Positions 11,369 to 63,910 of a stretch of DNA of 64,000 nt are shown one piece after another. This DNA is from Haliotis rufescens. Taxonomy: Eukaryota. The notes under the pieces are model-generated. The model had not been told where the DNA came from. It ran no database searches and worked only from the letters and a program-made list of their open reading frames with translations. Position numbers and translations under genes: made by a program. Position 1 is the stretch's first letter. Each line of letters opens with the position of its first letter. The stretch covers positions 17,670,001-17,734,000 of the forward strand of contig NW_025964383.1 in the NCBI RefSeq assembly GCF_023055435.1, written 5' to 3'.

Positions 11369-14300
11369 ATATTAATATTATGTCGAAGAATGTATTGCCA
11401 GAAGAAATAATACAACACATCGCTTCAACGTGAAATGGGGACTTTTGTTGATATATTAAATCCCCGTACATAACCCATCATACTTTTATCTTCATATATA
11501 ATAAATCCACTACAACAGCGTTTAATCACTAGTTGATACTGATTCATCAACACATGCTCATGATATCGTCGAAATCGCACAATCGAGACTTTTTTTTAAT
11601 ACGGAAAGGTTTTTGTCGCTTTTATTCAAGTTTTCTATCATGTATTTACCACCAGCAAAATTGTGCGATACATACTACATTATATTGAAGTCTTGGTAAA
11701 GACTGTTACGGCAATATTACCTTCGCTGACAATTATATCCTTCGCTGTGTGACCTTCCAGTGTCCGGTCTTGAGTGGCCTACGAGGAGAGAGCTTGTACC
11801 AGATACGTCTAGTGCATGTCAGAACGTTTATGCACAAATATTGGGGATCATGGTAGGACCAAGGTTTAGCAATCTTATCGAAGATGGCAGACTGAGCCTT
11901 GATTGCAGGTTAGTATCGTAATTCGCTAATAAAATCTTTTAAAATAATTAATTGTAAAGCTGTTTCCTTTCAAAGAAAGTAATCGTCATCCTCTGACGAG
12001 TGAGTGAGTGAGTTAAAATTTAACGTCGCATCGGCATTATTCCAGCCACATTGCGACAAGACCAAGTTAATAAGTTAATAATTGAGTCATTTATGCAACG
12101 TTTCATTTAAAAACAATTTATGAAACATATTTGAGCACAACAATATCATGCATACATTTTTAAAACACGGGCTAATGTCCACCGGTAACCAAAGCTAGGT
12201 CACCTCGCTGGGGATCATGGGGACTTACAGCACCTCGGCTTCCTGCATAATTCACCCAGCAGGATTTACGTCATCACTTTAGCTACTGATGGTTGTGCAT
12301 AATACAAGCCAATATTAAAAAATACTCAGCAATTAGTAGGCTTAAAAACACTGGTTGATGATATTTCCTGTCATGAAAATCATTCCAAGATCCAGTCGAT
12401 TGCTGAAAAGTTGTTCTAACAAGGATATCAGTCTACTTTCAGTAATTGTGTTTATCGTAACGCTCCGATAGCCTAGAGTGTTATTGATGTCAACTATTGA
12501 TATTTGAATTTGCCACCTTTGTACTGCCATGGAGACATGAACAATTGCCATGCATTGGTAGTTCGAGCAAGCATTACACTCATTAATCGTAACCATACAA
12601 TCCCATCCGTATGTGATATGCTTACATAGTAGAAGTCGGGTAAAGTTACAAGGGTCATTTTGTAAATATGACAACTTCTTACTAACTATTATTTAATGTG
12701 CCATATTGATAAAGCTGTTATTATTTTCACCGAACCACCGCAACATTGATAATGAAGAGGTTGGCACACATACAAATTAACTGAATTACCAACCACTTAC
12801 ATTCAACCTTCAGAATATAATTCGAATGTTAGGCAGAAAGACTTGCAATAAATATTTTCTCTTTGCAGCCAGCAGATATTGAGAACAGCAGATGAATGCC
12901 AACGATCAGAGTCTGTGAGAAGATCATATTTGATAGTTGAACGTCTGAACATTGCCCTCAATACCTTCTGTAGCCACAAACCAGGTATACGCATGTCCAG
13001 TTTTCTAAGAGCAGCTGCTTCTGAAATGTTAGCCCGTGTACCACATTGATTGACATGTTGATTCCTTAAATTAATTGACAATGCTATCCAAGATTTACAA
13101 CGATTTACTATGGCAGATGTGTTTAACTTAACAAGGCCTTCATAAATAGCTATCAGATGTCATGTGTTGAATTCATCAAATCTTACAGAAATCGAGGGAG
13201 AGGCGTCATGTTGGACCAGTAAAGAATTGCCGGAGACTGTTGTTTCATGTTCACAAGAAGACAGGTAGGGTGACTGTACGAGTGTCCATTGACATCTACT
13301 GAATAAATAACTTAAGACAACTTACACAGGTAGATTAACTATACCTTCTGTACATCTAGATGTCTAGATAAAACATATGGATTGATAGACTATACAATGC
13401 GTACATCTTAAAAACCGAAGTAAAGCATACATGGATAGGTGAACTGTTTATTGTGTACATCTACAGGTGCAATGATAAGAGATGAAATATGATTCCCTTT
13501 GTCACAAAATGACGTCCGTTCTGCGTTATATTGTGAAAAACATGCGTTTTCAATACAAGGAGTATTGACCGTAGGTATCGGAAGTTCAGACGATAGATAC
13601 ATTCGGAACGTTTCTGAGCGACTTCAATTACCTCTTATTTCATTACAATGATTTAATTCTAACTGGCATGTACACAGTGTCGCAATGGAGATGTGTGACG
13701 ATATGTGGTGTCTGTACGGATATATGGCCCCTTGAAGTGTCCAATACTTTCATGAAATGTAGACATCTTCCATGGATCATTTGGTAAATGCATTCGTGAT
13801 GCACGTAAACTTACTGGATATTTGCAAGACATCAGTCCGGTGTCAGTCACAAACGTCAGGGTACGTGCGGTAATGCACAATTACCCTATCAAAAGATATC
13901 TAAATTGATAATTAGGTCTTTGGAATTTTAGGTAGATTGATGGTGAAATTATCCTTCCGATTTGGTACCGGAACAGGGGTGGTCCTGTCGTCTAAGGCGC
14001 CGCGATTCGCTGTGCAGAGTTGCGACCCTTGGGCACGCAAGAAACCTATTATTCTGAGTTCGAATCCAGGTTCTTATGTTTCTAGGTTGTCAGCACAATA
14101 CCTGAATCACTTTGGGCTTTCCTCCCACATTTAGCTGACACGCCATTATATAACCGGAAGGGTAATGGTAAATCTTTGAGACAGGCATTCGGGGTACATT
14201 TTTTGGACCAAGCAAAATATTTCTCTTCACAGTGGAAACATCATGTAAGACCTGCCTCACTTCCTGTTTTCCTGCCTTAAGTTGACCTAAATAACAAATT

Positions 14301-14557
14301 TGCACCTTTATTATTATAATAAAAAAGACACTTGTGACGAGATAATTGCAATATATGAATCAAATGTCTCCATTAACCCGAGTGCCTTATTTGGCGACAA
14401 GATGTTCAATAGACATGTTATTATTTACTAAATATGTTTATTCTGTTTCAGTCGTGCTTTTGCTGAATGTGCTGACCAAAATGTGAGCAATCTCCGAGAG
14501 TGCACCAACACTACTGGCGCCATCTTCCGGCAGCTGATTGTGGATTTGTATCGTTAG
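10797..14557 (+). CDS. Copy 2: intact 5-exon gene, 162-aa putative secreted Cys-rich protein
   Basis: join(10797-10839,11761-11908,12869-12984,13189-13264,14452-14557), all GT-AG and phase-compatible. MKFVMCVAAVLLSSVSGLEWPTRRELVPDTSSACQNVYAQILGIMVGPRFSNLIEDGRLSLDCSQQILRTADECQRSESVRRSYLIVERLNIALNTFCSHKPEIEGEASCWTSKELPETVVSCSQEDSRAFAECADQNVSNLRECTNTTGAIFRQLIVDLYR*. TATA at 10740, AATAAA at 14623. Synonymous differences between copies (GAA/GAG, CGA/AGA, TGC/TGT) support the frame. Confidence 0.88.
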
Positions 14558-15130
14558 ACGTATCCATGCAAACACACCTTCCGATAAAACTGGAGCAAAA
14601 CATTATGTTATGTTTGAATCTTAATAAATTAGTCTGAATTTCGACCATGCCTGTGTTTCTGGTACTTTTTGGCAAATGTCGACAACGCGAGAATGCAACA
14701 TTTGGACATGATGCAAAATCTCACAGTCCCGCAATCTGGACTTGTCAAGTTAGGTCACAAAAACACGAAATCGCAAGAATGCGACAATTCATTTTCTCGC
14801 GTTTTAGACGCTGTCCGTGCGCATGCGTAATATCATAAGGGTCAAGGCGCATGCCCACATCAGAAGTCCTCTGGTCATGCTTCTTTCATGCTCTATATTG
14901 TCCAAGTAGCATTTAGCAAACTTATGACTTTAGCTTGAAAATTCTATGTAATGTTCATACACAAAGTCTTATGTAGTGTATTCAAGTCCTCTCCCGTTTG
15001 TTACAGTCTAATTAAGACCATCAACATACTCAGTATAATTTAACCAAAGACAGTGACACCAATACTTTGATATTAGATATAATGTGTTCATTTCGGGAAG
15101 ATGCGTTGATCAGTCAAATAACACTAACTT

Positions 15131-15179
<49 letters not shown>

Positions 15180-16172: not shown

Positions 16173-17703
16173 ACATGCATCAACCAAGTCAGCGAGTCTG
16201 ACCTTCCGATCCCGTTAGTCGCCTCTTGCTACAACCACCTCTCACGACAATACTAATGAATACTATCACTGTATGTTTGGACAATACCGGTATATTGTCT
16301 TTTTCCAACATCCTGCATATCTTCACACGAGGCGACTAACGGGGTCGGGTGGTCAGGCTCGCTGACTTGGTTGTTGGTCATTGTATCCCAATTGCGTGCG
16401 TCGATGCTCATGATGTAATCTCTGGATTGTCTGGTCCAATCTCGATTATTTACAGACCGCCGTCATTTAGCTGGAATATTGCTGAGTGCGGCGTTTAACA
16501 ACAAACAAACAAAACAAAGACCTGATGGAAAACTTTACACAAGCAGGTGACAAATCGAATTCAATTATGAAAATAAAGGAAATTAGCAACGGTTTTCTGT
16601 GATCGAAAAGACGAATTGTTTCGCGACTAGATTCCTGTATATAATGTGTCTTTACGCATGTTTTGTGACCATAGCAACATCCCACAGAATACAAACATGT
16701 AAAAAATGTGCAGGGATGGGGGGTATTCATGTTCAACAAATTACTGCTCAAATGCAATATATGTGGTACATATCGCAATACATGAATCATGATTGCAAAA
16801 AAATTGCAATATGAAATTCAGGTCAAGGTCCATCACTGTTGACAACCAATTCTTCTTCGAAATTCCTTTGGGATATTTAGCAGTAGTCAGTTGGGTGTTC
16901 ACGCACCTTTGAAATGTTAATGTCTTAGCTGAATGTCTCTCCTTATTGTTCCATCAAATTAAGTCGTTATACAGATTTATAGGAAAGTCGGATAATTTTT
17001 GGCATATTATTCAGTTTACTGAATTCCTCATAACCTTTTAAGTTGACAAATGACTTGGAAGGATGATTACTCTTGCAATTGAAACAAATTGGAAAAATCA
17101 TTATCTTTTCTGAATGCTTCTTATATAAACACCTGGGATGTTCTGTGACACCGTGCACATCGACTGCATGCTGCCAGGATGATGTTTGTGATGTGTGTTG
17201 CTGCTGCTCTCCTCTCATCTGGTAGGTAACCATTATACTGTAGCATGTTTCAGTATGTATACATGGCAGACTAACGAAACGAGTTGCATACCATAAGCAT
17301 GCCAGCCAGCACATAATGATCGTTGATTTAAATCCCAGATACATCCTCATTATAATCCTTATCACGCTACCTCATTACACTGGTCTATAACAGAAAACTG
17401 TTAAAAGCGGCGTTTAACATCTCATTCACTGATTCCGTCGATGTGGTCACTTTGTGTGGACGATAGTTGACATATATGTGTTACAACTTGCTGTGTTTCT
17501 CGAGAATGCATAATTGTCAACAACTTTTTGTTGGATCTAAAACAATTCTTAACTGTACAATATTGATAATAAATCTGATGCTTAATAACATCTTTCTCAA
17601 TAATATTGTAATAGCAGCAAAACGACACATTGACATATGAGTAAAAAATGGTTAAAGGTGTGCTTCTCCAAATTCATAAAAGTTATGGAAGATATTATGT
17701 CGA

Positions 17704-17977
17704 CATACCAGTCGAAACTGATGACTAAACCGTCAGCGTTGTATTATATTCACTTCGAGTAGTTAGTTTTATAGCAGTACGACATGTTTCGGCCATTTGA
17801 AATTGTGAATAGTGGCATTAAATATAATATATTTAGGCCCCTTAATCAGTTGTTGATCACTCTTAATATTAATGCACTAGCTAAGTACCTATTCTGAATA
17901 ACGCATTCATATTTCAACTCTCCCTTGAAATCCCCTTCACGTTGAAGCGATGTGTAATATTTTTTCTTCTGGCAATA
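17704..17977 (-). repeat. Complex inverted duplication in intron 1 of copy 3
   Basis: 17704-17935 is the reverse complement of upstream unit sequence (equivalent to 15627-15858). It is followed by an inverted copy of ~42 nt of local intron sequence. Confidence 0.9.
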
Positions 17978-20900
17978 ATACAACACATCGCTTCAACGTG
18001 AAATGGGGACTTTTTGTTGATATATTCAATCCCCGTACATAACCCATCATACTCTTCTCTTCATATATAATAAATCCACTACAACAGCGTTAAATCACTA
18101 GTTGATATGGATTCATCAACACATGCTCACCATATCATCGGAATCGTACAATCGAGACTTTTTTTGAATACGGAAAGGTTTTTGTCGCTTTTATTCAAAT
18201 CTCCTATCATGTATTTTACCACCAGCAAAATTCTGAGATACATACTACATTATGTTGAAGTCTTGGTAAAGACTATTACGACAATATTACCTTCGCTGAC
18301 AATTATATCCTTCTGTGTGACCTTCCAGTGTCCGGTCTTGAGTGGCCTACGAGGAGAGAGCTTGTACCAGATACATCTAGTGCATGTCAGAACGTTTATG
18401 CACAAATATTGGGGATCATGTTTAGACCAAGTTTTAGCAGTTTTATCGAAGATGGCAGACTGAGCCTTGATTGCAGGTAAGTATCGTAATTCGCTAATAA
18501 AATCTTTTTAAACAATAATTGTTAAGCTGTTTCCTTTCAGAGAAAGTAATCGTCAACCTCTGACGAGTGAGTGAGTGAGTTAAAATTTAACGTCGCATCG
18601 GCATTATTCCAGCCATATTGCGACAAGACCAAGTTAATAAGTTTACAATTGAGTCAATTATGCAACCTTATATTTAAAAACAATTCATGAAACATATTTG
18701 AGCATAATAATATCATGTATACGTTTTTAAAACACGGGCTAATGGCAACCGGTAACCAAAGCTAGGCCACCTCGCTGGGGATCATGGGGACTTACAGTAC
18801 CTCGGCTTCCTGCGTCATACCCCAGCACCCATGACTTTAGCTACTGGTGGTTGTGCATAATACTAGCCAATATTAAAAACTACTCAGCCATTAGTAGGCT
18901 TAAAAACACTGGTTGGTCATATTGACTGTCATGAAAATCATTCCAAGGTCAACTCGATTGCTGGAAAGTTGTTCTAACAAGGATATCAAGTCTACTTTCA
19001 GTAATTGTGTATATCGTAACTCTCCGATAGCCTAGAGTGTTATTGATGTCAACTATTGATATTTGAATTTGCCACCTTTGTACTGCCATGGAGACATGAA
19101 CAATTGCCATACATTGTAGTTCGAGCAAGCATTCCACTCATTAATCGTAATCATACAATCCCATCCGCATGTGATATGCTTACATAGTAGAAGTCGGGTA
19201 AAGTAACAAGAGTCATTTTGTAAATATGACAACTTCTTACTAACTATTATTTAATGTGCCATATTAATAATGAAGAGGTTGGCACTCATACAAATTAACT
19301 GAATTTCCAACGACTTACATTCTACCTTCAGAATATAATTCGAATGTTAGGCAGAAAGACTTGCAATAAATATTTTCTCTTTCCAACCAGCAGACATTGA
19401 CAAGAGCAGATGAATGCCAACGATCAGGGTATTCGAGAAGATCACATTTCGAAGTTGAACAGCTGAACATTGCCCTCAAAACCTTCTGTAGCCACAAACC
19501 AGGTGTACGCATGTCCACCTTTCTGAGAGCAGCTGCTTCTGAAATGTTAGCCCGTGTACCACCTTGAGTGACATGTTGATTCCTTAAATTATTTGACAAT
19601 GTTCTCCAAGATTTACTACGATTTAATATGGCAGATGTGTTTAACTTTACAAGACCTTCATAAATAACTATTAGATGCTACGTGTTGAATTCATCAAACC
19701 TTTCTGTTACAGAAATCGAGAGAGAGGCGTCATGTTGGACCAGTGAAGAATTGCCGGAGGCTCTTGTTTCATGTTCACAAGATGACAGGTAGGGTGACTG
19801 TACGAGTGTCCATTGACATCTACTGATTAATACCTTAAGGCAACTTACACAGGCAGATTAACTATACCTTCTGTACATCTAGATGTCTAGATAAAACATA
19901 TGGATTGATAGACTAGACAATGCGTACATCTCGAAGCCGAATTATAACATACATGGATAGGTGAACTGTTTATTGTGTACATCTACAGGTGAAATGATAA
20001 GAGGTGAAATAGGATTCCCTTTGTCACAAAATGACGGCCGTTCTGCGTTAATTGTGAAAAACATGCGATCGGTTCCATCATAAATGCCTGTCTGTGCACA
20101 GTATCGTCTGTAAGTTCTGGTGAAGAATAATCTTCGAGGAAGAATTCACGTTTCTAAGAATAAATGGCGATGAAGACGACAGAAATTGACACTTCATGCA
20201 AGGAGTATTGATCGTAGATACCGGAAGTTCAGACGATAGATACATTCGGAACGTTTCTGTGCGACTTCAATTACCTCTTATTTCATCACAACGAATTAAT
20301 TCTAACTGGCATGTACACAGTGTCGCTTTGTGGATGTGTGACGATATGTGGTGTCTGTACGGACATATGGCCCCTTGAAGTGTCCAATACTTTCATGAAA
20401 TGTAGACAACTTCCATGAATCATTTGGTAAATGCATTCGTGATGCACGTAAACTTACTGGATCTTTGCAAGACATCAGTCCGGTGTCAGTCACAAACGTC
20501 AGGGCGCGTACAGTAACGCACAATTACCCTATCAAAAGATATCTAAATTGATAACTTGGTCTTTGGAATTTTCAGTAGAATGACTATACAGACGGTGAAA
20601 TTATCCTTCCGATTTGTGGTCCTTCTTAGAATAAAAAACTCAACAGCTCGGGTATTGCTGAGTGTGGCGTTAAACAAATAAATAAATATGGTTATGAGGA
20701 ATCTCCTAACTAGTGCATGAAGAGATACTAATTAATTTGTAGTTACAAAGTGAAATTATGCACGGAGACTGTACAGGTTGCACCTGCATTAATGCTTCAA
20801 TTGTGAGTGAATAGAACAACTGGCAAAAAACACATCACCAACTGATGGACTTTCGTTTGACTTTAAGACCAATATATCAGCTTCCAGCAAGTATCTAAAC

Positions 20901-21913
20901 AGTGACTTACTGTAGTTGGTTTGCTTGTTGTTTTACGCCGCACTCTGCAATATTCCAGCTATATGACGGCGGTCTGTAAATAATCGAGTCTGGACCAGAC
21001 AACCCAGTGATCGATATCATTAGCATCGATCAACGGAATTGGGATCGATGACATGCATCAACCAAGTCAGCGATCCTGACCACCGATCCCGTTAGTCGCC
21101 TTTTACGACAAGCATAGTCTCCTTTTACGGCAAGCATGGGTTGTTGAAGACCAATTCTACCCTGAATCTTCACGGGGCTGCTCTAACTGTAAGTAGGTAC
21201 CCCTAGTGTGATGGTCCCAGTGTTCACGTTACTAACAGCACCGATACAATGCCCCTATATATATGAGTATGTGAGTGAGTATGGTTTTACGCCGCTTTTA
21301 GCAATATTCCAGCAATATTCCAGCAATATCACTGCGGGGTGGGCCTAAATATATAAAATTTGCACTTATATATCTATACGGCCAAATGTTAACACTCAAT
21401 GATAGGCGGATAAAAGCATCAATAAGACACTGATGCGTCAAATTTGAAAAAAAAAAATATTCTTATAAAATACTATAAACCGTAAATTCGTTCCTGTAAT
21501 CAAAAGAAAACGGCTGTTAAAACATGTGTTTATCAACCACTATCGGATTGTGGTTATTAGACCATTACTGATCGATCTGATAAATCTATATTCATGAAGC
21601 TTCAGAGAAACACTCTCAGCCAAATGTTTTCATTTTGACAGTCCAAGCTGTAATTCCGATTCATTTGCACAAATATACATCTCGTCAAGGTGGAAGCAAA
21701 TTGGACGCCCATGAGGATGCCTTTTTCTTGCATAAATGTCCTGTCCCAAAATTCCATACTGACGTTATGCACAAGGAAGTCGAATACCAGTATTTCACAT
21801 ATTGTTTTCTCAGCAAACCACAGATACATTTGCTTTCAGTATTAACACATTATCCTGACCCTTATGAAACAGTGATGAACCTATATAAATGGTCACCATG
21901 TTAGTGACAAATT

Positions 21914-22143
21914 GGGGACAGGGGTGGCCCTGTCGTCTAAGGCGCCGCCATTGCTGTGCAGAGATGCGTACCTTGGGTACGCAAGAAACCTATGATTGTG
22001 AGTTCGAATCCAGGTTCTCCCCGATTATGTTTCTAGGTTGTCAGCACCATACCTGAATCACTTCGGGCTTTCCTCCCACATTAAGTAGACACGCCATGAT
22101 ATAGCTGGAATACTGTTAAAAGCGGCGTTAAACACTCACTCAC
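21914..22143 (+). mobile_element. tRNA-derived SINE (same insertion as 177-406)
   Basis: Near-identical to 177-406, with TSD. Confidence 0.75.
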
Positions 22144-22801
22144 TAGTGACAAATGCCCTATTGATCAAGGTATTAAGTATTTCCTGCAGCTGATTTTGGA
22201 TATGTTTCTTTAGACGTATCCATGATAACACATTCAGATAAAAGTGGAGCAAAACATCATGTTATGTTTGAATCTTAATAAATGAGTCTGAATTTCGACC
22301 ATCGTTTCTTTAGCATTCTAGTAGCATGCCTGTGTTTCTGGTACATGCACATTTTGTGAAATGTCGACAATGCGAGAATGCGACATTTGGACATGATACA
22401 AAATCTCGCAATCACGCAATCTCGACTTGTCAAATTAGACCACAAAGACACGAAATCACGAGAATGCGACAATTCATTTTCTCGCGTTTTAGACGCTGTC
22501 CGTGCGCATGCGTAATATCATAAGGGTCAAGTCGCATGCCCACATCAGAAGTCCTGTTGTCATGCCTCTTTATTGTCCAAGTAGCATTTAGCAAACTTAT
22601 GACTTGAGCTTGAAAATTCTATGTAATGTTCATACACAAAGTCTTATGTAGTGTATTCAAGTCCTCTCCCGTTTGTTACAGTCTAATTAAGACCATCAAC
22701 ATACTCAGTATAATTTAACAAAAGACAGTGATACCAATACTTTGATATTAGATATTATGTGTTCATTTCGGGAAGATGCGTAGATCAGTCAAAGAACACT
22801 A

Positions 22802-22842
<41 letters not shown>

Positions 22843-22856
22843 AACTACTACTACTG

Positions 22857-22890
<34 letters not shown>

Positions 22891-24736
22891 ATCATAACAA
22901 TACGTCCGACGATTACAAAACTAAACATTAACGCGTTGCACACTTTGGCAGCAGATATGCAACAGGAGGTTTTATTTTACATTAAATATGTCTGCAGCAC
23001 TACCATCATTTCGTTTATTTACAAATGGTATTGACAGTGTTATCGTTGTTATCGTCACCTGATTAAATGGTAAAGTTGAAAGATATTCAAGACACACGTC
23101 CCAATCAAAGGTTTCAAAGGCAAGCTAGAACATATTGTGGTAAGACGTTGTCAAACAGTCAAAGGCAATGTTGAAATATCGAAGCCACTCATTGTGTTCC
23201 ATGACCACAACATCACTGGCTTTGAAGGAAGCATTGGAATATAAAGTTTCAACATACGGTTGGAAGTCTAATGGTGCAAAGTAAGCGTTGAATGATATAC
23301 AGTTGATTGTCAGTGTCTTACCGTCACTGGGGTCCAAAGGACATTCGAAATATAAAAGGACATTCGTTCTCACATCATTATATGGTTTAATGTAAGAATT
23401 GAAATACTTGTACATTTGCAAATCTCGTTGCTTGTCATCGGCTCAAAGGGAGAGTTGAAGTATTAAAAGATGTGCCTCGTCGTCAGGGGATTTCAAGGGA
23501 GAGTTGAAATATGAATGCGTTCTTCACAACAGGTACTTAGCTAGTGCATTAATATGAAGGGTGATCAACAACTGATTAAGGGGCCTAAATATATTATATT
23601 TAATGCCACTATTCACAATTTCAAATGGCCAAAAAATGTCGGACTGCTATAAAACTTACTACTCGAAGTGAATATAAAACAACGCTGAAGGTTTAGTCAT
23701 CAGTATCGACTGGTATGTATTATCGCTGACATTATGTATTTAAGGCAATGTGCCAAGTCTCGATCTGATGTCAGGAAAACAGGGATACGATGACATGCAT
23801 CAACCAAGTCAGCGAGTATGACCACCCGATCCCGTTAGTCGCCTCTTGTGACAACCACCACTTACGCCAATACTAATGAATACTATCACAGTATGTTTGG
23901 AAAATACCGGTATATTGTGTTTTTCCAACATCCTGCATATCTTCACACGAGGCGACTAACGGGATCGGGTGGTCACGCTCGCTGACTTGGTTTATGCATG
24001 TCATGTATCCCAATTGCGTGGATCGATGCTCATGATGTACATTACTGGATTGTCTGGTCCAGTCTCGATTATTTACAGACCGCCGTCATATAGCTGGAAT
24101 ATTGTTGAGTGCGGCGTTTAACAACAAACAAACAAACAAAAACACCTGATCGAAAAGGCGAATTGTTTTGCGACTAGTTTCCTGTATATAATGTGTCTTT
24201 ACGCATGTTTTGTGACCATAGCAACATCCCACAGAATACAAAGATGTCAAAAATGTGCAGGGATGGGGGGTGGGTGGGGGGTATTCATGTTCAACAAATT
24301 ACTGCTAATCTGCAATATATTGTGGTACATATTGCAATACATGAATCATTATTGCAATAAATTGCAATATGAAATTCAGGTCAAGGTCCATCACTGTTGA
24401 CAACCTATTCTTCTTCGAAATTTCCTTTGGGATATTTAGTTGTAGTCAGTTGGGTGTTCACGCCCCTGTGAAATGTTAATGTATCAGTTGAATGTCTCTC
24501 CTTATTGTTCCATCAAATTAAGTCGTTATACAGATTTATAGGAAAGTCGAATAATTGTGGGCGTATTATTCAGTTTACGGAATTCCTCATAACCTTTTAA
24601 CTTGACACATGACTTGGAAGGATGATTACTCTTGCAATTGAAACAAATTGGAAAATCATTAACTTTTCTGAATACTTCTTATATAAAAACCTGGGATGTT
24701 CTGTGACAACGAGCACATTGACTGCATGCTGCCAGG

Positions 24737-30484: not shown

Positions 30485-30546
<62 letters not shown>

Positions 30547-33056: not shown

Positions 33057-33580
33057 ATGAAGTTTGTGATGTGTGTTGCTGCTGTTCTCCTCTCATCTGG
33101 TAGGTAACCATTATATTGTAGCATGTTTCAGTATGTATACATTGCAGACTAAAGGAACGAGTTGCATACCATAAGCATGCCAGCCAGCACATAATGATCG
33201 TTGATTTAAATCCCAGATACATCCTCATTATAATCCTTACCACGCTACCTCATTACACTGGTCTATAACAGAAAACTGTTAAAAGCGGCGTTTAACATTA
33301 CATGCAATGATTTCGTCGATGTGGTCACTTTGTGTGGACGCAAGTTGACATATATGTGACATATATGTGTCACAACTCGAGAATGCATAATTGTCAACAA
33401 CTTTTGGGGGGATCTAAAACAATTCTTAACGGATGTACAATATTGATCAATTTACTAAGAAAGAAATTCTTTTGGGATTCTTAATAACATCTTTCTTAAT
33501 AATATTGTAATAGCAGCAAAACGGCACATTGACATATGAGTATAAAATGGTTAAAGGCCTGCTTCTCTAAATTCATAAAA

Positions 33581-33641
<61 letters not shown>

Positions 33642-38297: not shown

Positions 38298-38344
<47 letters not shown>

Positions 38345-44962: not shown

Positions 44963-45019
<57 letters not shown>

Positions 45020-45993
45020 TATGTGAGTGAGTATGCTTTTACGCCACTTTTAGCAATATCCCAGAAATATCACGGCGGGTTGGGTCTAAATATATAAAAT
45101 TTGCACTTATTATACGGCCAAATGTTAAGATGGGTCGGGGGTGTGTGTCCTAGTCGTCTTAGGCGCCGCGATTCGCTGTGCAGAATTGCGTCCCTTGGGC
45201 ACACACGAGACCTACGATTGTGAGTTCGATGATGTTCCTTCGATTATGTTCCTAGGTTGTCAGCACCATAGTATTACCTGAATCACTTTGGGCTTTCACC
45301 AACACTAAGCTGACTTCCCGTGATATAATTGCAATTCTGTTAAAAGTTGCGTTAAACCCAACTCACTCACTCACTAGTGACAAATGCCCTATTGATCAAG
45401 GTATTAAGTATGTCCTGAAGTTGGGATAGTGGTGTACTAAGTTAAACAATGTTCTGACATGATTGAACTTTGTTGTTTTCTGAGAGTAAATAATTCAAGC
45501 CAATCCGCTGAGTTTTAAGATTTCACATGGTCTTAATGCCATTTGTCTGAGATATTTGTGAATATCAAGAAAGACCTTTCCTTCTTAGCATTAAGGGTAA
45601 TGGTAAATCTTTAAAACATGCATTCGGGGGTACATTTGTTGGACCAAGCAAAATATTTCTCTTCGTAGTGGAAACATCATCTAAGACCTGCCTCACTTCC
45701 GGTTTTCCTCCCTTAAGTTGACCTAAATAACAAATTTGCACCTTTATTATTATAATCAAAAAGACACTTGTGACGAGATAATTGCAATATATGAATCAAA
45801 TCTCTCCATTAACGCGAGTGCCATATTTGGCGACAAGATGTACAATATACATGTTATTATTTACTAAATATGTTTATTCTGTTTCAGTCGTGCTTTTGCT
45901 GAGTGTGCTGACCAAAATGTGAGCAATCTCAGAAAGTGCACCAACACCACTGGCGCCATCTTCCGGCAGCTGATTTTGGGTGTTTTTCGTTAG
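40903..45993 (+). CDS. Copy 6: intact 5-exon gene, 162 aa
   Basis: join(40903-40945,41962-42109,43077-43192,43396-43471,45888-45993). Exon 3 QQTLTKADECQRSESVRSTYFRVGYLNISLNTFCNHKP; C-terminus ...LILGVFR*. TATA 40846, AATAAA 46059. Confidence 0.88.
41003..41689 (+). repeat. ~348-nt tandem duplication in intron 1 of copy 6
   Basis: acgagttgcataccataagc...aatattgtaatagcagca occurs from 41003 and again from 41351. Confidence 0.9.
44966..45016. repeat. (TA)n microsatellite expanded in intron 4 of copy 6
   Basis: Direct reading; only a few TA units at this site in other copies. Confidence 0.95.
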
Positions 45994-46567: not shown

Positions 46568-46633
<66 letters not shown>

Positions 46634-48640: not shown

Positions 48641-51600
48641 ATGAAGTTTGTGATGTGTGTTGCTACTGCTCTCCTCTCATGTGGTAGGTAACCATTATAT
48701 TGTAGCATGTTTCAGTATGTATACATGACAGACTAACGAAACGAATTGCATACCATAAGCATGCCAGCCAGCACATAATGATCGTTGATTTAAATCCCAG
48801 ATACATCCTCATTATAATCCTTACCACGCTACCTCATTACACTGGTATATAACAGAAAACTGTTAAAAGCGGCGTTTAACATTACATGCAATGATTCCGT
48901 CGATGTGGTCACTTTGTGTGGACGCAAGTTGACATATATGTGTCACAACTTACTGTGTTTCTCGAGAATGCATAATTGTCAACAACTTTTGGTTGGATCT
49001 AAAACAATTCTTAACTGATGTACAATATTGATCAATTTACTAAGAAAGAAATTCTTTTGGGATTCTTAATAACATCTTTCTTAATAATATTGTAATAGCA
49101 GCAAAACGGCACATTGACATATGAGTATAAAATGGTTAAAGGCCTGCTACTCCGAATTCATAAAAGTTATTATATTATGTTGTTGTGTTGTGTTGTGTTG
49201 TGTTGTGTGTTGTGTTGTGTTGTGTTGTGTTGTGTTGTGTTGTGTTGTGTTGTGTTGAAGAATGTATTGCCAGAAATAATACAATACATCGCTTCAACGT
49301 GAAATTGGGACTTTTTGCTGATATATTAAATCCCCGTACATAACCACTCATACTTTTATCTTCATATATAATAAATCCACTACAACAGCATTTAATCACT
49401 AGTTGATATGTATTCATCATCACATGCTCGTGAAATCGTCGGAATCGCACAATCGAGACTCTTTTTTTTAATACGGAAAGGTTTTTGTCGCTTTTATTCA
49501 AGTTTCCTATCATGTATTTTACCACCAGCAAAATTGTGCGATACATACTACATTATATTGAAGTCTTGGTAAAGACTATTACGGCACTATTACCTTCGTT
49601 GACAATTATATCCTTCTCTGTGTAACCTTCCAGTGTCCGGTCTTGAGTGGCCTACGAGGAGAGAGATTGTACCGGATACATCTAGTGCATGTCAGAACGT
49701 TTATGCACAAATATTTGGGATCATGTTTAGACCAAGGTTTAGCAATCTTATCGAAGATGGCAGACTGAGCCTTGATTGCAGGTTAGTATCGTAATTCGCT
49801 AATGAAATATTTTTAAACAATAATTGTTAAGCTGTTTCCTTTCAGAGAAAGTAATCGTCAACCTCTGACGAGTGAGTGAGTGAGTTAAAATTAACGTCGC
49901 ATCGGCATTATTCCAGCCATATTGCGACGACACCAAGTTAATAAGTGTACAATTGAGTCATTTATGCAAAGTTACATTTAAAAACAATTTATGAAACATA
50001 TTTGAGCATAACAATATCATGTATACATTTTTAAAACACGGCTAATGGCCACCGGTAACCAAAGCTAGGCCACCTCGCTGGGGATCATGGGGACTTACAC
50101 TACCTCCGTTTCCTGCATGATACCCCAGCACCCATCACTTTAGCTACTGGTGGTTGTGCACGATACTAGCCAATATTAAAAATACTCAGCAATGAGTAGG
50201 CTTAAAAACACTGGTTGATGATATTTCCTATCATGAAAATTATTCCAAGGTGCAGTCGATTGCTACAAAGTTGTTCTAACAAGGAAATCAGTCCACTTTC
50301 AGTAATGATGAATATCGTAACTCTCCCATAGCCTAGAGTGTTATTGATGTCAATTCTTGATATTTGTACTGCCATGGAGACATGAACAATTGCCATGCAT
50401 CGGTAGTTCGAGCAACCATTACACTCGTTAATCCTAACCATACAATCCCATGCGTTTGTTATATGCTACATAGTAGAAGTCGGGTAAAGTTACAAGAGAA
50501 ATTTTGTAAATATGACAACTTCTTACTAACTATTATTTAATGTGCCATATTCATAAAGCGGTTATTATTTTCACCGAACCACAGCAACATTGATAATGAA
50601 GAGGTTGGCACACATACAAATTAACTGAATTACCAACGACTTACATTCTACCTTCAGAATATATTATATTTTCTCTTTGCAGCCAAAAGACGCTGACAAG
50701 AGCAGATGAATGCCAACGATTTTCAGGGTCTGTGAGAAGATCACGTTTCACAAATAAACATCTGAACATTGCCCTCAATACCTTCTGTAACCACAAACCA
50801 GGTATACGCATGTCCACCTTTCTAAGAGCAGCTGCTTCTGAAATGTTAGCCCGTGTACCACCTTGAGTGACATGTTGATTCCTTAAATTAATTGACAATG
50901 CTATCCAAGATTACCACGATTTACTATGGCAGATGTGTTTAACTTTACAAGACCTTCATCAATAACTATCGGATGCTATGTGTTGAATTCATCAAATCTT
51001 ACAGAAATCGAAGGAGAGGCGTCATGTTGGACCAGTGAAGAATTGCCGGACACTGTTGTTTCATGTGCACAACAAGACAGGTAGGGTGACTGTACAAGTG
51101 TCCATTGGCATCTACTGAATAAATAACTTAAGACAACTTAGTCATGTAGATTAACTATACCTTCTGTACATCTAGATGTCTAGATAAAACATATGGATTG
51201 ATAGACTATACAATGCGTACATCTTGAATCCGAATTATAACATACATGGATAGGTGAACTGTTTATTGTGTACATCTACAGGTGAAATCATAAGAGGTGA
51301 AATAGGATTCCCTTTCTCTCAAAATGACGGCCGTTCTGCGTTATATTGTGAAAAACATGCGTTTTCGATCTGCGATCGGTTCCGTCATAAATGCCTGTCT
51401 GTGCAAAGTAGCGTCTGTAACTTCTGGAGAAGAATAATCTTCGAGGAAGAATTCACCTTCTAAGTATAAATGACGATGAAGACGACAGAAAGTGACCTTT
51501 TAATACAAGGAGTATTGGCCGTAGGTACCGGGGATTCAGACGATAAATACATTCGGCACGTATCTGTGTGACTTCAATTACCTCGTATTTCATCACAAGG

Positions 51601-52715
51601 AATTAATTCTAACTGACATGTACACAGTGTCGCTATGTGGATGTGTGACGATATGCGGTGTCTGTACGGACATATGGCCCCTTGAAGTGTCCAATACTTT
51701 CATGAAATGTAGACAACTTCCATGGATCATTTGTAAATGCATTCGTGATGCACGTAAACTTACTGGATTTTTCCAAGACGTCAGTCCGGTGTCATGCATA
51801 AACGTCAGGGCACGTGCGGTAACGCACAATTACCCCATCAAAAGATATCAAAATTGATAATTAGGTCTTTGGAATTTGAAGTAGAATGACTATATGGACG
51901 GTGAAATTATCCTTCCGATTTGTGGTCCTTCACAGAATAATATACTCCATAGCTGGGGTATTGCTGAGTGTGGCGTTAAACAAAGAAATAAATGTCGTTA
52001 TGACGAATCTCCAACTAGTACATGAAGAGATACTAATTAAATTTGTAGTTACAAAGTGAAATTATGCACGGAGACTGTACAGGCTGCACCTGCATTAATG
52101 CTTCAATTGTGGGTGAATAGAACAACTGGCAAAAAACACACCACCAACTGATGAACTTTCGTTTGACTTTAAGACCAATATATCAGCTTCCAGCAAGTAT
52201 GTCAACAGTGACTTACTGTAGTTGGTTGGTTTATTGTTAAACGCCGCACTCAGCAATATTCCAGCTATATGAAGGCGGTCTGTAAATAATCGAGACTGAA
52301 CCAGACAACCCAGTGATTGATATCATGAGCATCGATCCACCAAATTGGAATACGATGACATGCATCAACCAAGTCAGCGAGCCTGACCACCCGATCCCGT
52401 TAGTCCCCTCTTACGACAAGCATAGTCTCCTTTTACGGCAGGCATATTGACCTTAATAACCTTGATTATTATAAAAAAGACACTTGCGATGAGATAATTG
52501 CAATATATGAATCAAATCTCTCCATTAACGCGAGTGCCATATTTGGCAACAAGATGTACAATATACATGTAATTATTTACTAAATATCTTTATTCTGTTT
52601 CAGGCGTGCTTTTGCAATTGCTGAGTGTGCTGACCAAAATGTGAGCAATCTCAGAGAGTGTACCAACACTACTGGCGCCATCTTCCGGCAACTGATTTTG
52701 GATATTTTTCCTTAG
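48641..52715 (+). CDS. Copy 7: intact 5-exon gene, 165 aa, with two in-frame insertions
   Basis: join(48641-48683,49634-49781,50683-50801,51005-51080,52604-52715). +3 nt in exon 3 (QKTLTRADECQRFSGSVRRSRFTNKHLNIALNTFCNHKP) and +6 nt in exon 5 (RAFAIAEC), both preserving frame. TATA 48584, AATAAA 52781. Confidence 0.88.
49178..49257. repeat. (TTGTG)n pentanucleotide microsatellite in intron 1 of copy 7
   Basis: Direct reading; occupies the site of the (ATT)n tract of copies 2, 5, 8 and 9. Confidence 0.95.
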
Positions 52716-53243: not shown

Positions 53244-53379
53244 NNNNNNNNNNNNNNNNNNNNNNNNNNNNNNNNNNNNNNNNNNNNNNNNNNNNNNNNN
53301 NNNNNNNNNNNNNNNNNNNNNNNNNNNNNNNNNNNNNNNNNNNNNNNNNNNNNNNNNNNNNNNNNNNNNNNNNNNNNNN
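53244..53379. other. Assembly gap (136 N) at the expected (TAC)n position
   Basis: Flanks match the sequence on either side of (TAC)n in other units. Confidence 0.95.
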
Positions 53380-55335: not shown

Positions 55336-58300
55336 ATGAAGTTTGTGATGTTTGTTGCTGCTGTTCTCCTCTCATCTGGTAGGTAACCATTATACTGTAG
55401 CATGTTTCAGTATGTATACATGACAGACTAACGAAACGAGTTGCATACCATAAGCATGCCAGCCGGCACATAATGATCGTTGATTTAAATCCCAGATACA
55501 TCCTCATCATAATCCTTACCACGCTACCTCATTACACTGGTCTATAACAGAAAACTGTTAAAAGCGGCGTTTAGTATCACATGCAATGATTCCGTCGATG
55601 TGGTCACTTTGTGTGGACGCTAGTTGACATATATGTGTTACAACTTGCTGTGTTTCTCGAGAATGCATAATTGTCAACAACTTTTGGTTGGATCTAAAAC
55701 AATTCTTAACTGATGTACAATATTGATAATAAGTCTTTTGGGATGCTTAATAACATCTTTCTCAATAATATTGTAATAGCAGCAATACGACACATTGACA
55801 TATGAGTATAAAATGGTTAAAGGCCTGCTTCTCCAAATTCATAAAAGTTATTATTATAATTATTATTATTATTATTATTATTATATTAATATTATGTCGA
55901 AGAATGTATTGCCAGAAGAAATAATACAATACATCGCTTCAACGTGAAAGGGGGACTTTTTGTTGATATATTAAATCCCCGTACATAACACCTCATACTT
56001 TTCTCTTCATATATAATAAATCCACTACAACAGCATTTAATCACTAGTTGATATGGATTCATCAATTCATGCTCACCATAACGTCGGAATCGTACAATCG
56101 AGACTTTTTTTTGAATACGGAAAGGTTTTTGTCGCTTTTATTCAAGTTTCCTATCATGTATTTTACCACGAGCAAAATTATGCGATACATACCACATTAT
56201 ATTGAAGTCTTGGTAAAGACTATTACGGCAATATTACCTTCGCTGACAATTATATCCTTCTCTGTGTAACCTTCCAGTGTCCGGTCTTGAGTGGCCTACG
56301 AGAAGAGAGATTGTACCAGCTACATCTAGTGCATGTCAGAACGTTTATGCACAAATATTGGGGATCATGTTTAGACCAAGGTTTAGCAATCTTATCGAAG
56401 ATGGCAGACTGAGCCTTGATTGCAGGTAAGTATCGTAATTCGCTAATAAAAGCTTTTAAAAACAATAATTGTTAAGCTGTTTCCTTTCAGAGAAAGTAAT
56501 CGTCAACCTCTGACGAGTGAGTGAGTGAGTGAGTTAAAATTTAACGTCGCATCGGCATTATTCCAGCCATATTGCGACGAGACCAAATTTATAAGTTTAC
56601 AATTGAGTCATTTATGCAAAGTTATATTTAAAAACAATTTACGAAACATATTTGAACATAACAATATCATGCATACATTTTTAAAACACGGGCTAATGGC
56701 CACTGGTAACCAAAGCTAGGCCACCTCGCTGGGGATCATGGGGACTTACAGTACCTCGGCTTCCTGCATGATACCCCAGCAGGATTTACGGCATCACTTT
56801 AGCTACTGGTGGTTGTGCATAATATTAGCCAATATTAAAAACTACTCAGCAATCAGTAGGCTTAAAAACACTGATTTATCATATTTACTGTCATGAAAAT
56901 CATTCCAAGGTCCAGTGGATTGCTGAAAAGGTGTTCTAACAAGGATATCAGTCCACTTTCAGTAATTATGCATATCGTAACTCTCCGATAGCCTAGAGTG
57001 TTATTAATGTCTACTCTTGATATTTGAATTTGCCACCTTTGTACTGCCATGGAGACATGAACAATTGCCATGCATCGGTAGTTCGAGCAACCATTACACT
57101 CATTAAGCGTAACCATACAATCCCATCCGTATGTTATATGCTTACATAGTAGAAGTCGGGTAAAGTTACAAGAGTCATTTAATAAATATGACAACTTCTT
57201 ACTAACTATTATTTAATGTGCCATATTGATAAAGCTGTTATTATTTTCACCGAACCACCGCAGCATTGATAATGAAGAGGTTGGCACACATACACATTAA
57301 CTGAATTACCAACGACTTACATTCTACCTTCAGAATATAATTCGAATGTTAGGCAGAAAGACTTGAAATAAATATTTTCTCTTTCCAGCCAGCAGACATT
57401 GACAATGGCAGATGAATGCCAACGATCAGGGTATTTGAGAAGATCACATTTCAGAGTTGAACATCTGAACATTGCCCTCAATACCTTCTGTAGCCACAAA
57501 CCAGGTATACGCATGTCCAGTTTTCTATGAGCAGCTGCTTCTGAAATGTTAGCCCGTGTACCACCTTGAGTGACATGTTGATTCCTTAAATTAATTGACA
57601 ATGCTATCCAAGATTACTACGATTTATTATGGCAGATGTGTTTAACTTTACAAGACCTTCATAAAAAATTATCAGATGCTATGTGTTGAATTCATCAAAT
57701 CTTACAGAAATCGAAGGAGAGGCGTCATGTTGGACCAGTGAAGAATTGCCGGACACTGTTGTTTCATGTTCACAACAAGACAGGTAGGGTGACTGTACAA
57801 GTGTCCATTGACATCTACTGAATAATACCTTAAGACAACTTAAACAGGCAGATTAACTATACCTTCTGTACATCTAGATGTCTAGATAAAACATATGGAT
57901 TGATAGACTATACAATGCGCACATCTTGAAGCCGAATTATAACATACATGGATAGGTGAACTGTTTATTGTGTACATCTACAGGTGAAATCATAATAGGT
58001 GAAATAGGATTCCCTTTGTCACAAAATGACGGGGCAGCTCTAACTGTAAGCAGGTTCCCCAAGTGTGATGGTCCCAGTGTTTGTGTTACTAACAGCATCG
58101 ACACAATGCCCCTATATATATATGAGTATGTGAGTGAGTATGCTTTTACGTCCCTTGGGCACACAAGAAACCTACGATTGTGAGTTCGATTATGTTCCTT
58201 CGATTATGTTCCTAGGTTGTCAGCACCATAGTATTACCTGAATCACTTTGGGCTTTCCTCCAAAACTAAGCTGACTTCCCGTGATATAATTGCAATTCTG

Positions 58301-58957
58301 TCAAAAGCTGCGTTAAACCCAACTCACTCACTCACTAGTCACAAATGCCCTATTGATCAAGGTATTAAGTATTTCCTGAAGTTGGGATAGTGGTGTACTA
58401 AGTTAAACAATTAAATAATCGGACATGATTGAACTTTGTTGTTTTCTGAGAGTAAATAATTCAAGCCAATCCGCTGAGTTTTTAGATTTCACATGGTCTT
58501 AATGCCATTTGTGTGAGATATGTGTGAATATAAAGAAAGACCTTCCTTCTTAGTATTAAGGGTAATGGTAAATCTTTGAGACAGGCATTCGGGGTACATT
58601 TGTTGGACCAAGCAAAATATTTCTCTTCGCAGTGGAAACATCATCTAAGACCTGCCTCACTTCCGGTTTTCCTCCCCCAAGTTGACCTAAATAACAAATT
58701 TGCACCTTTATTATTATAATAAAAAAGACACTTGTGACGAGATAATTGCAATATATGAATCAAATCTCTCCATTAACGCGAGTGCCATATTTGGCAACAA
58801 GATGTACAATATACATGTTATTATTTACTAAATATGTTTATTCTGTTTCAGGCGTGCTTTTGCTGAGTGTGCTGACCAAAATGTGAGCAATCTCAGAAAG
58901 TGCACCAACACCACTGGCGCCATCTTCCGGCAGCTGATTTTGGGTGTTTTTCCTTAG
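55336..58957 (+). CDS. Copy 8: intact 5-exon gene, 162 aa
   Basis: join(55336-55378,56278-56425,57389-57504,57708-57783,58852-58957). Exon 3 QQTLTMADECQRSGYLRRSHFRVEHLNIALNTFCSHKP. TATA 55279, AATAAA 59023. Confidence 0.88.
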
Positions 58958-59558: not shown

Positions 59559-59590
<32 letters not shown>

Positions 59591-59607
59591 AACTACTACT
59601 ACTGCTG

Positions 59608-59644
<37 letters not shown>

Positions 59645-61484: not shown

Positions 61485-61995
61485 ATGAAGTTTGTGATGT
61501 GTGTTGCTACTGTTCTCCTCTCATCTGGTAGGTAACCGTTATACTGTAGCATGTTTCAGTATTTATACATGACAGACTAACGAAACGAGTTGCATACCAT
61601 AAGCATGCCAGCCAGCACATAATGATCGTTGATTTAAATCCCAGATACATCCTCATCATAATCCTTACCACGCTACCTCATTACACTGGTCTATAACAGA
61701 AAACTGTTAAAAGCGGCGTTTAGTATCACATGCAATGATTCCGTCGATGTGGTCACTTTGTGTGGACGCTAGTTGACATATATGTGTTACAACTTGCTGT
61801 GTTTCTCGAGAATGCATAATTGTCAACAACTTTTGGTTGGATCTAAAACAATTCTTAACTGATGTACAATATTGATAATAAGTCTTTTGGGATGCTTAAT
61901 AACATCTTTCTCAATAATATTGTAATAGCAGCAATACGACACATTGACATATGAGTATAAAATGGTTAAAGGCCTGCTTCTCTAAATTCATAAAA

Positions 61996-62047
<52 letters not shown>

Positions 62048-63910
62048 TAATATTATGTCGAAGAATGTATTGCCAGAAGAAATAATACAATACATCGCTT
62101 CAACGTGAAATGGGGACTTTTTGTTGATATATTAAATCCCCGTACATAACACCTCATACTTTTATCTTCATATATAATAAATCCACTACAACAGCGTTTA
62201 ATCACTAGTTGATATTGATTCATCAACACATGCTCACCATATCGTCGGAATCGTACGATGGAGACTTATTTTTGAATACGGAAAGTTTTTGTCGCTTTTA
62301 TTCAAGTTTCCTATCATGTATTTTACCACCAGCAAAATTGTGCGATACATACTACATTATATTGAAGTCTTCGCAGACAATTATATCCTTCTCTGTGTGA
62401 CCTTCCAGTGTCCGGTCTTGAGTGGCCTACGAGGAGAGAGATTGTACCAGCTACATCTAGTGCATGTCAGAACGTTTATGCACAAATATTTGGGATCATG
62501 GTAAGACCAAGGTTTAGCAATCTTATCGAAGATGGCAGACTGAGCCTTGATTGCAGGTAAGTATCGTAATTAGCTAATAAAATATTTTAAAATAATTAAT
62601 TTTTAAGCTGTTTCCTTTCAGAGAAAGTATTCGTCAACCTCTGACGAGTGAGTGAGTGAGTTAAAATTTAACGTCGCATCGGCATTATTCCAGCCATATT
62701 GCGACGAGACCAAGTTAATAAGTTTACAGTTGAGTCGTTTATGCAAAGTTACATTTAAAAACAATTTATGAAACATATTTGAGCATAACAATATCATGCA
62801 TACATTTTTAAAACACAGGCTAATGCCCACCGATAACCAAAGCTAGGCCACCTCGCTGGGGATCATGAGGACTTACAGTACCTCGGCTTCCTTCATAATA
62901 CCCCTGCAGGATTTACGGCATCACTTTAGCTACTGATGGTTGTGCATAATACTAGCCAATATTAAAAAATATTCAGCAATTAGTAGGCTTAAAAACACTG
63001 GTTTATGATATATCATATCATGAAAATCATTCCAAGGTCTAGTCGATTGCTGAAAAGTTGTTCTAATAAGGATATCAGTCCACTTTCAGTAATTGTGTTT
63101 ATCGTAACTCTCCGATAGCCTAGAGTGTTATTGATGTCAACTATTGATATTTGAATTTGCCACCTTTGTACTGCCATGGAGACATGAACAATTGCCATGC
63201 ATCTGCAGTTTGAGCAACCATTACACTCATTAATCGTAACCATACAATCCCATCCGTATGTGATATGCTACATAGTAGAAGTCGGGTAAAGTTACAAGAG
63301 TCGTTTTGTAAATATGACAACTTCTTACTAACTATTGTTTAATGTGCCATATTGATAAAGCTGTTATTATTTTCACCGAACCACCGCAGCATTGATAATG
63401 AAGAGGTTGGCACACATACACATTAACTTAATTACCAACGACTTACATTCTACCTTCAGAATATAATTCGAATGTTAGGCAGAAAGACTATAAATAAATA
63501 TTTTCTCTTTCCAGCCAGCAGACATTGACAATGGCAGATGAATGCCAACGATCAGGGTATTTGAGAAGATCACATTTCAGAGTTGAACATCTGAACATTG
63601 CCCTCAATACCTTCTGTAGCCACAAACCAGGTATACGCATGTCCAGTTTTCTATGAGCAGCTGCTTCTGAAATGTTAGCCCGTGTACCGCATTGAGTGAC
63701 ATGTTGATTCCTTAAATTAATTGACAATGCTATCCAAGATTTACTACGATTTACTATGGCAGATGTGTTTAACTTTACAAGGCCTTCATAAATAGCTATC
63801 AGATGTTATGTGTTGAATTCATCAAATCTTACAGAAATCGAGGGAGAGGCGTCATGTTGGACCAGTGAAGAATTGCCAGAGACTGTTGTTTCATGTTCAC
63901 AACAAGACAG
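61485..63910 (+). CDS. Copy 9: exons 1-4 intact; exon 5 lies beyond the window end
   Basis: join(61485-61527,62409-62556,63515-63630,63835-63910), open with canonical splice sites. TATA 61428. Confidence 0.82.

Follow-up and report, generated by a model that had tools for sequence, protein, structure and literature searches.

A tandem gene array in Haliotis rufescens

We analyzed a stretch of 64,000 nt from the genome of Haliotis rufescens (NCBI RefSeq assembly GCF_023055435.1, contig NW_025964383.1, positions 17,670,001 to 17,734,000 of the forward strand), referred to below as the window; plain coordinates are positions within it. By self-comparison, the whole window is a tandem array on the plus strand, with units that are 88-98% identical to each other and a guanine-cytosine content of ~38% throughout. 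It holds nine tandem units of a five-exon, 162-codon gene: six are complete and intact (c1, c3, c4, c5, c6, and c7), c8 leaves the window, c2 is a pseudogene, and U0 is without exon 3. The gene encodes a protein with a hypervariable segment in exon 3 (the loop patch), and the evolution of this segment is our main subject. A sequence-only reading of the window had described variable peptides between invariant ADECQR and LNI[AS]L motifs, and this description held: a six-frame scan placed both motifs in the same frame in eight copies (at 12888, 19406, 26519, 34993, 43096, 50702, 57408, and 63534), spaced 6.1-8.5 kb apart, with the intervening peptides exactly as quoted. A whole-genome profile scan found the family at two genomic places only, namely C605 at 17.62-17.87 Mb, where the array comprises ~16 copies, and C24 at 3.66-3.79 Mb, where an older cluster comprises ~7. 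In the flanks of the window lie five further intact copies (A, B, C, c9, and the inverted copy M) and one divergent copy.

The five exons measure 43, 148, 116, 76, and 106 nt and together encode 162 residues, with AG/GT at every junction of the intact copies. Direct splicing of exon 3 to the last exon, as the earlier reading implied, was rejected since the phases clash (1 vs. 2): exon 3 ends in phase 1 and the C-terminal exon needs phase 2, and therefore an exon was missing. With exon 2 alone as an HMMER query, three full-length Haliotis proteins of ~165 residues were recovered, and these homologs revealed a 76-nt exon 4 that encodes a C-W-T-S-E-E motif and sits ~200 nt 3′ of exon 3, in addition to a 43-nt exon 1. 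Proteins predicted in this way are identical to gene models that appear in RefSeq as H. rufescens "uncharacterized protein" entries. The c5, c6, and c7 models equal P0020, P0018, and P0014, respectively, and c1 equals P0019 save for exon 1. The hypervariable segment does lie in exon 3. Homology searches used single exons or the database proteins equal to models (P0020, P0018, and P0014), and exons were joined only for the codon alignment.

All copies in the window are read from the plus strand. Copy c1 (10797..14557) has exons at 10797-10839, 11761-11908, 12869-12984, 13189-13264, and 14452-14557, and its loop patch (12906-12944) reads SESVRRSYLIVER. Copy c3 (24737..29883) has exons at 24737-24779, 25557-25704, 26500-26615, 26825-26900, and 29778-29883, with the patch PWSLRRSLFKVEQ at 26537-26575, and copy c4 (33057..37709) has exons at 33057-33099, 34031-34178, 34974-35089, 35294-35369, and 37604-37709, with the patch PWSMRRSRFTVEE at 35011-35049. 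Those of c5 (40903..45993) lie at 40903-40945, 41962-42109, 43077-43192, 43396-43471, and 45888-45993, and its patch (43114-43152) is SESVRSTYFRVGY. Copy c6 (48641..52715; exons at 48641-48683, 49634-49781, 50683-50801, 51005-51080, and 52604-52715) carries a patch that is one codon longer, FSGSVRRSRFTNKH at 50720-50761, and two additional codons in exon 5. The patch of c7 (55336..58957; exons at 55336-55378, 56278-56425, 57389-57504, 57708-57783, and 58852-58957) is SGYLRRSHFRVEH at 57426-57464, and the same type, SGYLRRSHFRVEH, recurs at 63552-63590 in c8 (61485..63910), of which exons 1-4 lie at 61485-61527, 62409-62556, 63515-63630, and 63835-63910 and exon 5 lies ~2.5 kb past the window end. 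A conserved 13-mer with a TATA-box motif occurs ~57 nt upstream of the ATG of c3 (24675..24687, plus strand), and the same 13-mer is found 5′ of all nine exon 1 copies (3406, 10735, 17117, 24675, 32995, 40841, 48579, 55274, and 61423). A promoter scan detected no strict kappaB, AP-1, CRE, or C/EBP consensus within 400 nt upstream.

Selection on the exon 3 loop

The sequence-only reading attributed the variability of exon 3 to diversifying selection, and site-class tests, a tree-free count, and a comparison with introns all bear this out. Selection counts rest on the eleven distinct intact copies, which are paralogs from one assembly, and the patch was defined as codon 70 plus codons 77-91 of the alignment (16 codons). 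Within the patch, the mean proportion of non-synonymous differences (pN) was 0.262 and that of synonymous differences (pS) 0.058, a ratio (ω) of ~5.4, vs. a pN of 0.067, a pS of 0.088, and an ω of ~0.75 in the rest of the mature protein. Flanking introns near exon 3 diverge by 3-7%. Since synonymous divergence in the patch equals intron divergence, the patch is neither older nor more mutable than its surroundings, and the extra amino-acid changes must have been fixed. A tree-free minimum count over the 16 patch codons gave 29 non-synonymous vs. 2 synonymous changes, where 70.5% are expected to be non-synonymous (binomial p = 0.002). Likewise, the minimum number of mutations per site was higher in the patch than in the introns that flank exon 3 (0.69 vs. 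0.21 across 552 intron sites; 3.3-fold, odds ratio 8.6, Fisher p = 6e-10). As a control against post-hoc choice of the region, every 15-codon window of the coding sequence (CDS) was scanned, and the maximum fell on columns 78-92, with 26 of 109 changes (column-shuffling p = 0.003). The pair of copies singled out earlier as differing by non-synonymous changes only corresponds to c3 and c4, which differ at 5 of 116 nt in exon 3, all five non-synonymous (sd = 0, nd = 5).

Codon models M0, M1a, M2a, M7, M8, and M8a were fitted with our own code. For the whole CDS, twice the log-likelihood difference (2ΔlnL) was 55.2 for M1a vs. M2a, with 15% of sites at an ω of ~6, and 55.2 for M8a vs. M8; M7 vs. 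M8, the check originally proposed, gave 56.4 and a class of sites with ω >1. Under M0, ω was 1.28 for the whole CDS. For exon 3 alone, M1a vs. M2a gave 2ΔlnL of 22-30 on three trees (one each for the flanking introns, exon 3 with its flanks, and the whole CDS), with 29-34% of sites at an ω of ~8. When data were simulated under the null model M1a with each exon block on its own random tree, 2ΔlnL was 0-7.5 in 7 replicates, none of which reproduced the signal. Recombination thus inflates site-class tests, yet far below the observed 55.

Sites with a posterior >0.9 were 42 and 46 in exon 2; 70, 81, 85, 87, and 90 in exon 3; 119, 125, 127, and 129 in exon 4; and 163 and 165 at the C-terminus. Several of these switch among hydrophobic residues (42, L/S/F; 46, Q/V/F; 125, L/S/A/F; and 163, T/M/L/I/V). 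Residues 70, 84, 86, and 89 vary as had been stated and match selected sites with a shift of one alignment column, to which the exon 4 patch is added; the smaller variable motifs noted before in exon 2 and at the C-terminus are also present. Among 13 family members from outside the array, the most variable 13-column windows were residues 77-88, 41-52, and 117-129, and the C-terminus ranked fifth. Because these windows overlap the selected regions of the array, the variable face would be a property of the whole family.

Constraint and mosaic loop types

Exons 2-4 contain two indels only (3 and 15 nt), vs. 36 in introns 2 and 3, of which 8 are multiples of 3. The restriction to in-frame indels in exons, together with twelve intact open reading frames (ORFs), indicates that the reading frame is kept by selection and excludes pseudogene decay as the source of the variation. 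Exon 3 divergence between copies is bimodal. At one extreme, none of the 116 nt of exon 3 distinguishes c7 from c8, whose flanking introns are 5.8 and 3.9% divergent, and a single one of the 116 separates c3 from c9; at the other, c5 and c6 show 18 exon 3 differences in 116 nt but only 1 in the 203 nt of intron 3. The c5/c6 tract of low difference (1.2% over ~500 nt) starts directly 3′ of exon 3. Moreover, tree and types disagree: c5 groups with c6, and A with c1, in the intron tree, but by loop type c5 goes with c1 and c6 with M. The loop of M resembles a hybrid whose first half is of the c7 type and whose second half is of the c6 type. A protein of H. cracherodii (P0015) is closest to c7. 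The two are unlike at 12 of 162 residues, among them residues 116-119 and the selected sites 46 and 70, but share an identical 13-residue loop. Bimodal divergence, the mismatch between tree and types, and the loop identity of P0015 lead us to conclude that the loop occurs in discrete types that were created by selection, recombined, and then held. This is not the pattern of a plain arms race, as copies whose introns differ by 4-6% sometimes keep an identical loop type, and one type is also the same across species.

Protein family and predicted structure

Twenty-four family members were retrieved, all from H. rufescens, H. cracherodii, H. rubra, and H. asinina, and all named "uncharacterized." None of the 22 full-length members matched Pfam by hmmscan at E-values up to 10, nor did the exons alone, and a profile search of PDB sequences was without relevant match. 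Foldseek against the PDB returned nothing at E ≤0.001. The top VIA-align match among 48,161 chains reached Z 5.1 over 49 residues, a partial helical similarity of a kind the tool rates uninformative for helical proteins. Exon 2 matched eight long bacterial proteins (FG-GAP repeat or unrelated) among 1.84 billion representatives, through the D-G-x-L-S-L-D motif, and these matches were dismissed as spurious. Neither RefSeq LOC numbers nor topic searches led to a published description of the family. Judging from these comparisons, the family appears to be a Haliotis-restricted orphan with neither a Pfam nor a solved-fold match, that is, a probable new family undergoing a known kind of evolution.

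AlphaFold2, run on the alignment of 22 sequences, predicted an all-alpha fold of nine helices (mean predicted local distance difference test score 80.9, predicted template modeling score 0.73). Residues 1-28 are disordered in the model, and the patch (75-86) forms the loop between the helices at 65-74 and 87-99, where the confidence score falls to ~76. Across the 22 proteins, seven cysteines are invariant and the eighth is nearly so, in agreement with the fixed disulfide scaffold proposed from sequence. Two cysteines of older members, one of them in the loop, have been lost from the C605 array and its black-abalone relative, and the loop position is now R-R-S. Exon 1 encodes M-K, 12 hydrophobic or small residues, and V-S-G, which together make up a putative signal peptide. 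The part that follows a conserved dibasic W-x-x-R-R comprises ~138 residues (15.5 kDa, isoelectric point 4.5-5.7) and has two N-glycosylation sequons; the main variable loop is charged and basic.

In the ESM Atlas, two members lay nearest to nematode and arthropod DUF19/CPG4/DUF1397 clusters (PF01579, PF15481, PF07165), with scores of 0.81-0.89, below the 0.9 lead threshold, and the Atlas structure search returned template modeling scores <0.45, to unrelated families. The two groups are similar in length (~157 positions), the clusters being cysteine-rich helical extracellular domains, and these clusters are the nearest by language model (best scores 0.89 and 0.86, with 177-188 of 256 features shared), whereas Pfam finds no hit in 22 members. 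Membership was unconfirmed by hidden Markov model, a genome scan with PF01579 was without match at the locus, and a literature text search for DUF19 gave only unrelated DUF19xx papers; the relationship therefore stays a lead only.

Discussion

We consider it probable that the window is part of a Haliotis-restricted array of secreted proteins in which one loop is under diversifying selection and is held as a binding repertoire. In this model, exon 1 would supply a signal peptide, followed by a short N-terminal piece ending at the dibasic site (W-x-T-R-R). The mature domain would be an acidic, N-glycosylated, all-helical protein of ~15.5 kDa locked by its eight conserved cysteines. Positive selection favors amino-acid change between paralogs in the predicted loop between helices 2 and 3 (codons 77-89, exon 3), and it also acts on three smaller patches (codons 42/46, codons 117-128, and the C-terminus). 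New loop types probably originate by point mutation, travel between copies in short tracts of gene conversion or crossover whose ends lie at exon 3, and, once set, are kept by purifying selection. The patches may form one variable binding face, to which the ligand-contact surface proposed in the sequence-only reading would correspond, and the array could then act as a repertoire, encoded in the germline, of specificities for binding a partner that co-evolves with it.

Several points weigh against this interpretation. The codon models were our own implementation (F3x4, optimized branch lengths, one tree per run) and not PAML or HyPhy, and the 7 null replicates are a small control rather than a calibrated p-value. 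An ω of ~0.75 outside the patch means that part of the family may be under relaxed constraint. Finally, the comparisons are among paralogs of one assembly, in which A/B and U0/c3 may be assembly duplicates.

As to what the loop might bind, one tentative but reasonable proposal is a defence repertoire, in which the proteins would be secreted into haemolymph or mucus and would bind variable microbial or parasite molecules, the array providing many specificities. High tandem copy number and expansion within one lineage are consistent with this role, as are discrete loop types that are kept within the genome and across species and are shuffled by gene conversion. Snail FREPs, sea-urchin Sp185/333, and mussel myticin C are invertebrate immune families with hypervariable regions. 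As in the array, these are secreted proteins encoded by tandem families confined to particular lineages, their variable segments are mosaic, and they bear traces of both gene conversion and positive selection. However, they have no homology to the array family, nor does any other known immune family; the protein is acidic and thus unlike an antimicrobial peptide, and the upstream 400 nt are devoid of the strict kappaB consensus.

Conspecific recognition is a possibility that we also hold tentatively, with equal or slightly more reserve. The product would be a pheromone, a gamete-recognition protein, or a reproductive-tract factor whose loop co-evolves with a receptor, as in mouse ESP and ABP or abalone lysin and sp18. 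Positively selected reproductive proteins encoded in tandem arrays are classically known from abalone, where lysin and sp18 are acrosomal tandem paralogs under positive selection (PMC9022041). Like the array family, lysin and sp18 are small secreted helical proteins (~16-18 kDa) of this genus, are encoded by multi-exon tandem genes, and show recurrent positive selection in distinct surface regions. The conserved dibasic processing site after the signal peptide would suit such a role, and presumed orthologs of two closely related species differ at 7-12% of residues. The array family differs from lysin and sp18 in its eight conserved cysteines, in loop types that recur across species, and in its 16-23 copies, far above the four ancestral paralogs reported for them (PMC9022041). 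There is no sequence or fold match to either protein, and neither is among the Foldseek or VIA-align matches listed. Moreover, loops that serve species-specific recognition would be expected to diverge, yet one type is the same in two species. The rodent ESP, ABP (secretoglobin), and MUP pheromone multigene families (PMC3477143) likewise form large tandem arrays of small secreted proteins, which have diversified through duplication and positive selection, with gene conversion playing a part in some of them, but their sequences and folds are unrelated, and they belong to another phylum.

A bolder version of the repertoire model, which we regard as rather unlikely, is a cassette-like germline recognition repertoire built on an undescribed disulfide-locked helical fold, in which discrete loop types, generated by positive selection and exchanged within the array through short conversion tracts terminating at exon 3, would outlast a species split and which would serve defence or mate/self recognition.

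That the protein is instead a small-ligand carrier, analogous to insect odorant- and pheromone-binding proteins, with variable and partly hydrophobic residues lining a cavity beneath a C-terminal lid, seems improbable. Size, acidity, helicity, and tandem arrangement would fit, as would selected C-terminal residues and the hydrophobic switching at sites 42, 46, 125, and 163. Against this analogy, no odorant-binding or other carrier is among the structural matches listed, there is no Pfam match (PBP_GOBP), and the main variable loop is charged and basic. We give still less credence to a cleavable bait loop, in which the R-R-S core would be a protease target, either cut by a convertase into two disulfide-linked chains or offered as bait to foreign proteases, with the flanks tuning specificity. 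Every copy has the first arginine (column 82), and 7 of the 11 distinct copies have a second one directly after it, with hypervariable flanks on both sides; relatives carry a cysteine here instead. Since the cysteines are split 3+5 around the loop, two chains would stay linked. This idea suffers from the lack of homology to any inhibitor family, and the R-R pair could reflect recent shared ancestry.

A pattern without adaptive meaning (relaxed constraint, pseudogenes, mutation hotspot, misalignment, or assembly error) is very improbable and largely refuted: although ω is ~0.75 outside the patch, 2 of 9 window units are defective, and recombination inflates the likelihood-ratio test (2 of 7 null runs >5.99), neutrality caps dN at dS, whereas in the patch dN reaches ~5-fold dS and exceeds the intron rate more than 3-fold; a hotspot, ruled out by the low pS and the tree-free count, would raise synonymous changes too, yet just 2 of the 31 counted are of this kind; the copies can be aligned base for base across the patch, which rules out a hidden frameshift or misalignment; and RefSeq models and another species carry the same loop types.

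The preferred reading, a secreted array holding its loop types as a binding repertoire, would extend what is known of abalone, a textbook system for positive selection on reproductive proteins, by adding a family from this genus that has so far gone unannotated. The family shows a strong signal per site (ω ~6-8 at 15-30% of sites), its copy number is well above that of lysin and sp18, and our searches gave it neither a homolog outside Haliotis nor a known fold. With ~160 codons and ~23 copies, it is a compact test case for the joint role of tandem duplication, gene conversion, and selection in building and maintaining a set of binding specificities. It raises the question of whether these genes encode a new mollusc defence or communication molecule. 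If they are defence-related, they would bear on the conservation of red and black abalone and on aquaculture, and if the cassette-repertoire reading were true, they would constitute an invertebrate recognition system of an undescribed kind.

Other copies and features of the array

At the 5′ end of the window, the last exon of copy C (836..941, plus strand) encodes a C-terminus ending in LDMFL; its exons 1-4 precede the window. Unit U0 follows (3468..7956, plus strand; E1 3468-3510, E2 4288-4435, E4 4898-4973, and E5 7851-7956). Its exon 3 was lost by a deletion of ~0.65 kb, and splicing of the remaining exons in order would break the frame. Over the 4.7 kb following the deletion, U0 is 98.8% identical to c3; the unit was either duplicated very recently or doubled in the assembly. 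The RefSeq isoform P0013 consists of exons 1-3 of the upstream copy C and exons 4-5 of U0. More generally, RefSeq merges adjacent units into single loci with "isoforms" that mix exons across units (P0013, P0019, and P0017/P0020; e.g., LOC124119835 and LOC124119850), and P0031 has an unrelated N-terminus without signal peptide in place of exons 1-2.

Pseudogene c2 (17179..22232, plus strand) has exons at 17179-17221, 18329-18476, 19387-19502, and 19713-19788, and its loop patch lies at 19424-19462. The exon 3 acceptor has changed from AG to AA and codon 2 from K to M, and only the last ~50 nt of exon 5 are left near 22181-22232, with unrelated sequence in place of the upstream part. An assembly gap of N (53244..53379) is intergenic, between the last exon of c6, which ends at 52715, and exon 1 of c7 at 55336; both gap flanks are colinear with the repeat unit, and neither an exon nor a reading frame crosses it. 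Apart from chance frames, no other ORF of at least 110 residues was found in the window.

Outside the window, copies A and B (loci L003/L004; G000:C605:17624449 and 17642987) lie 18.5 kb apart and encode identical proteins of 157 residues with a five-codon deletion within the hypervariable loop; the pair is either a recent segmental duplication or an assembly duplicate. Copy M (G000:C605:17867106-17871335, minus strand; loci L007/L014) is an inverted outlier, in which a 7-nt deletion removes the TATA motif, both N-glycosylation sequons are lost, and the protein is basic (isoelectric point 8.7 vs. 4.5-5.7 in all others). In the C24 cluster (G000:C24:3657169-3785090; L001, L002, L008, L009, L015, and L016), ~7 genes are 45-63% identical to the array and retain two extra cysteines, one within the variable loop, and presumed orthologs from red and black abalone differ at 10-12% of residues. 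An additional N-glycosylation sequon, N-I-S, borders the hypervariable loop in c5 alone, where an A-to-S change has given LNISL (43153-43161).

In five of the nine promoters in the window, a palindromic GGAATTCC core with Rel/kappaB-like half-sites occurs ~155 nt upstream of the ATG (10638, 24579, 32898, 55177, and 61326). This core falls short of the strict kappaB consensus, and the remaining promoters read TGAATTCC at that site. Long (TAT/ATT)n microsatellites, which read as poly-Y ORFs, are found 3′ of the last exon in c2 and c3 (22759-23034 and 30442-30825) and at equivalent places in other units. Every unit also contains a pair of inverted repeats of 170-190 nt that are 81-93% identical (e.g., 28044-28214 vs. 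32230-32390), and these may represent an insertion similar to a miniature inverted-repeat transposable element or a structural element of the repeat unit.

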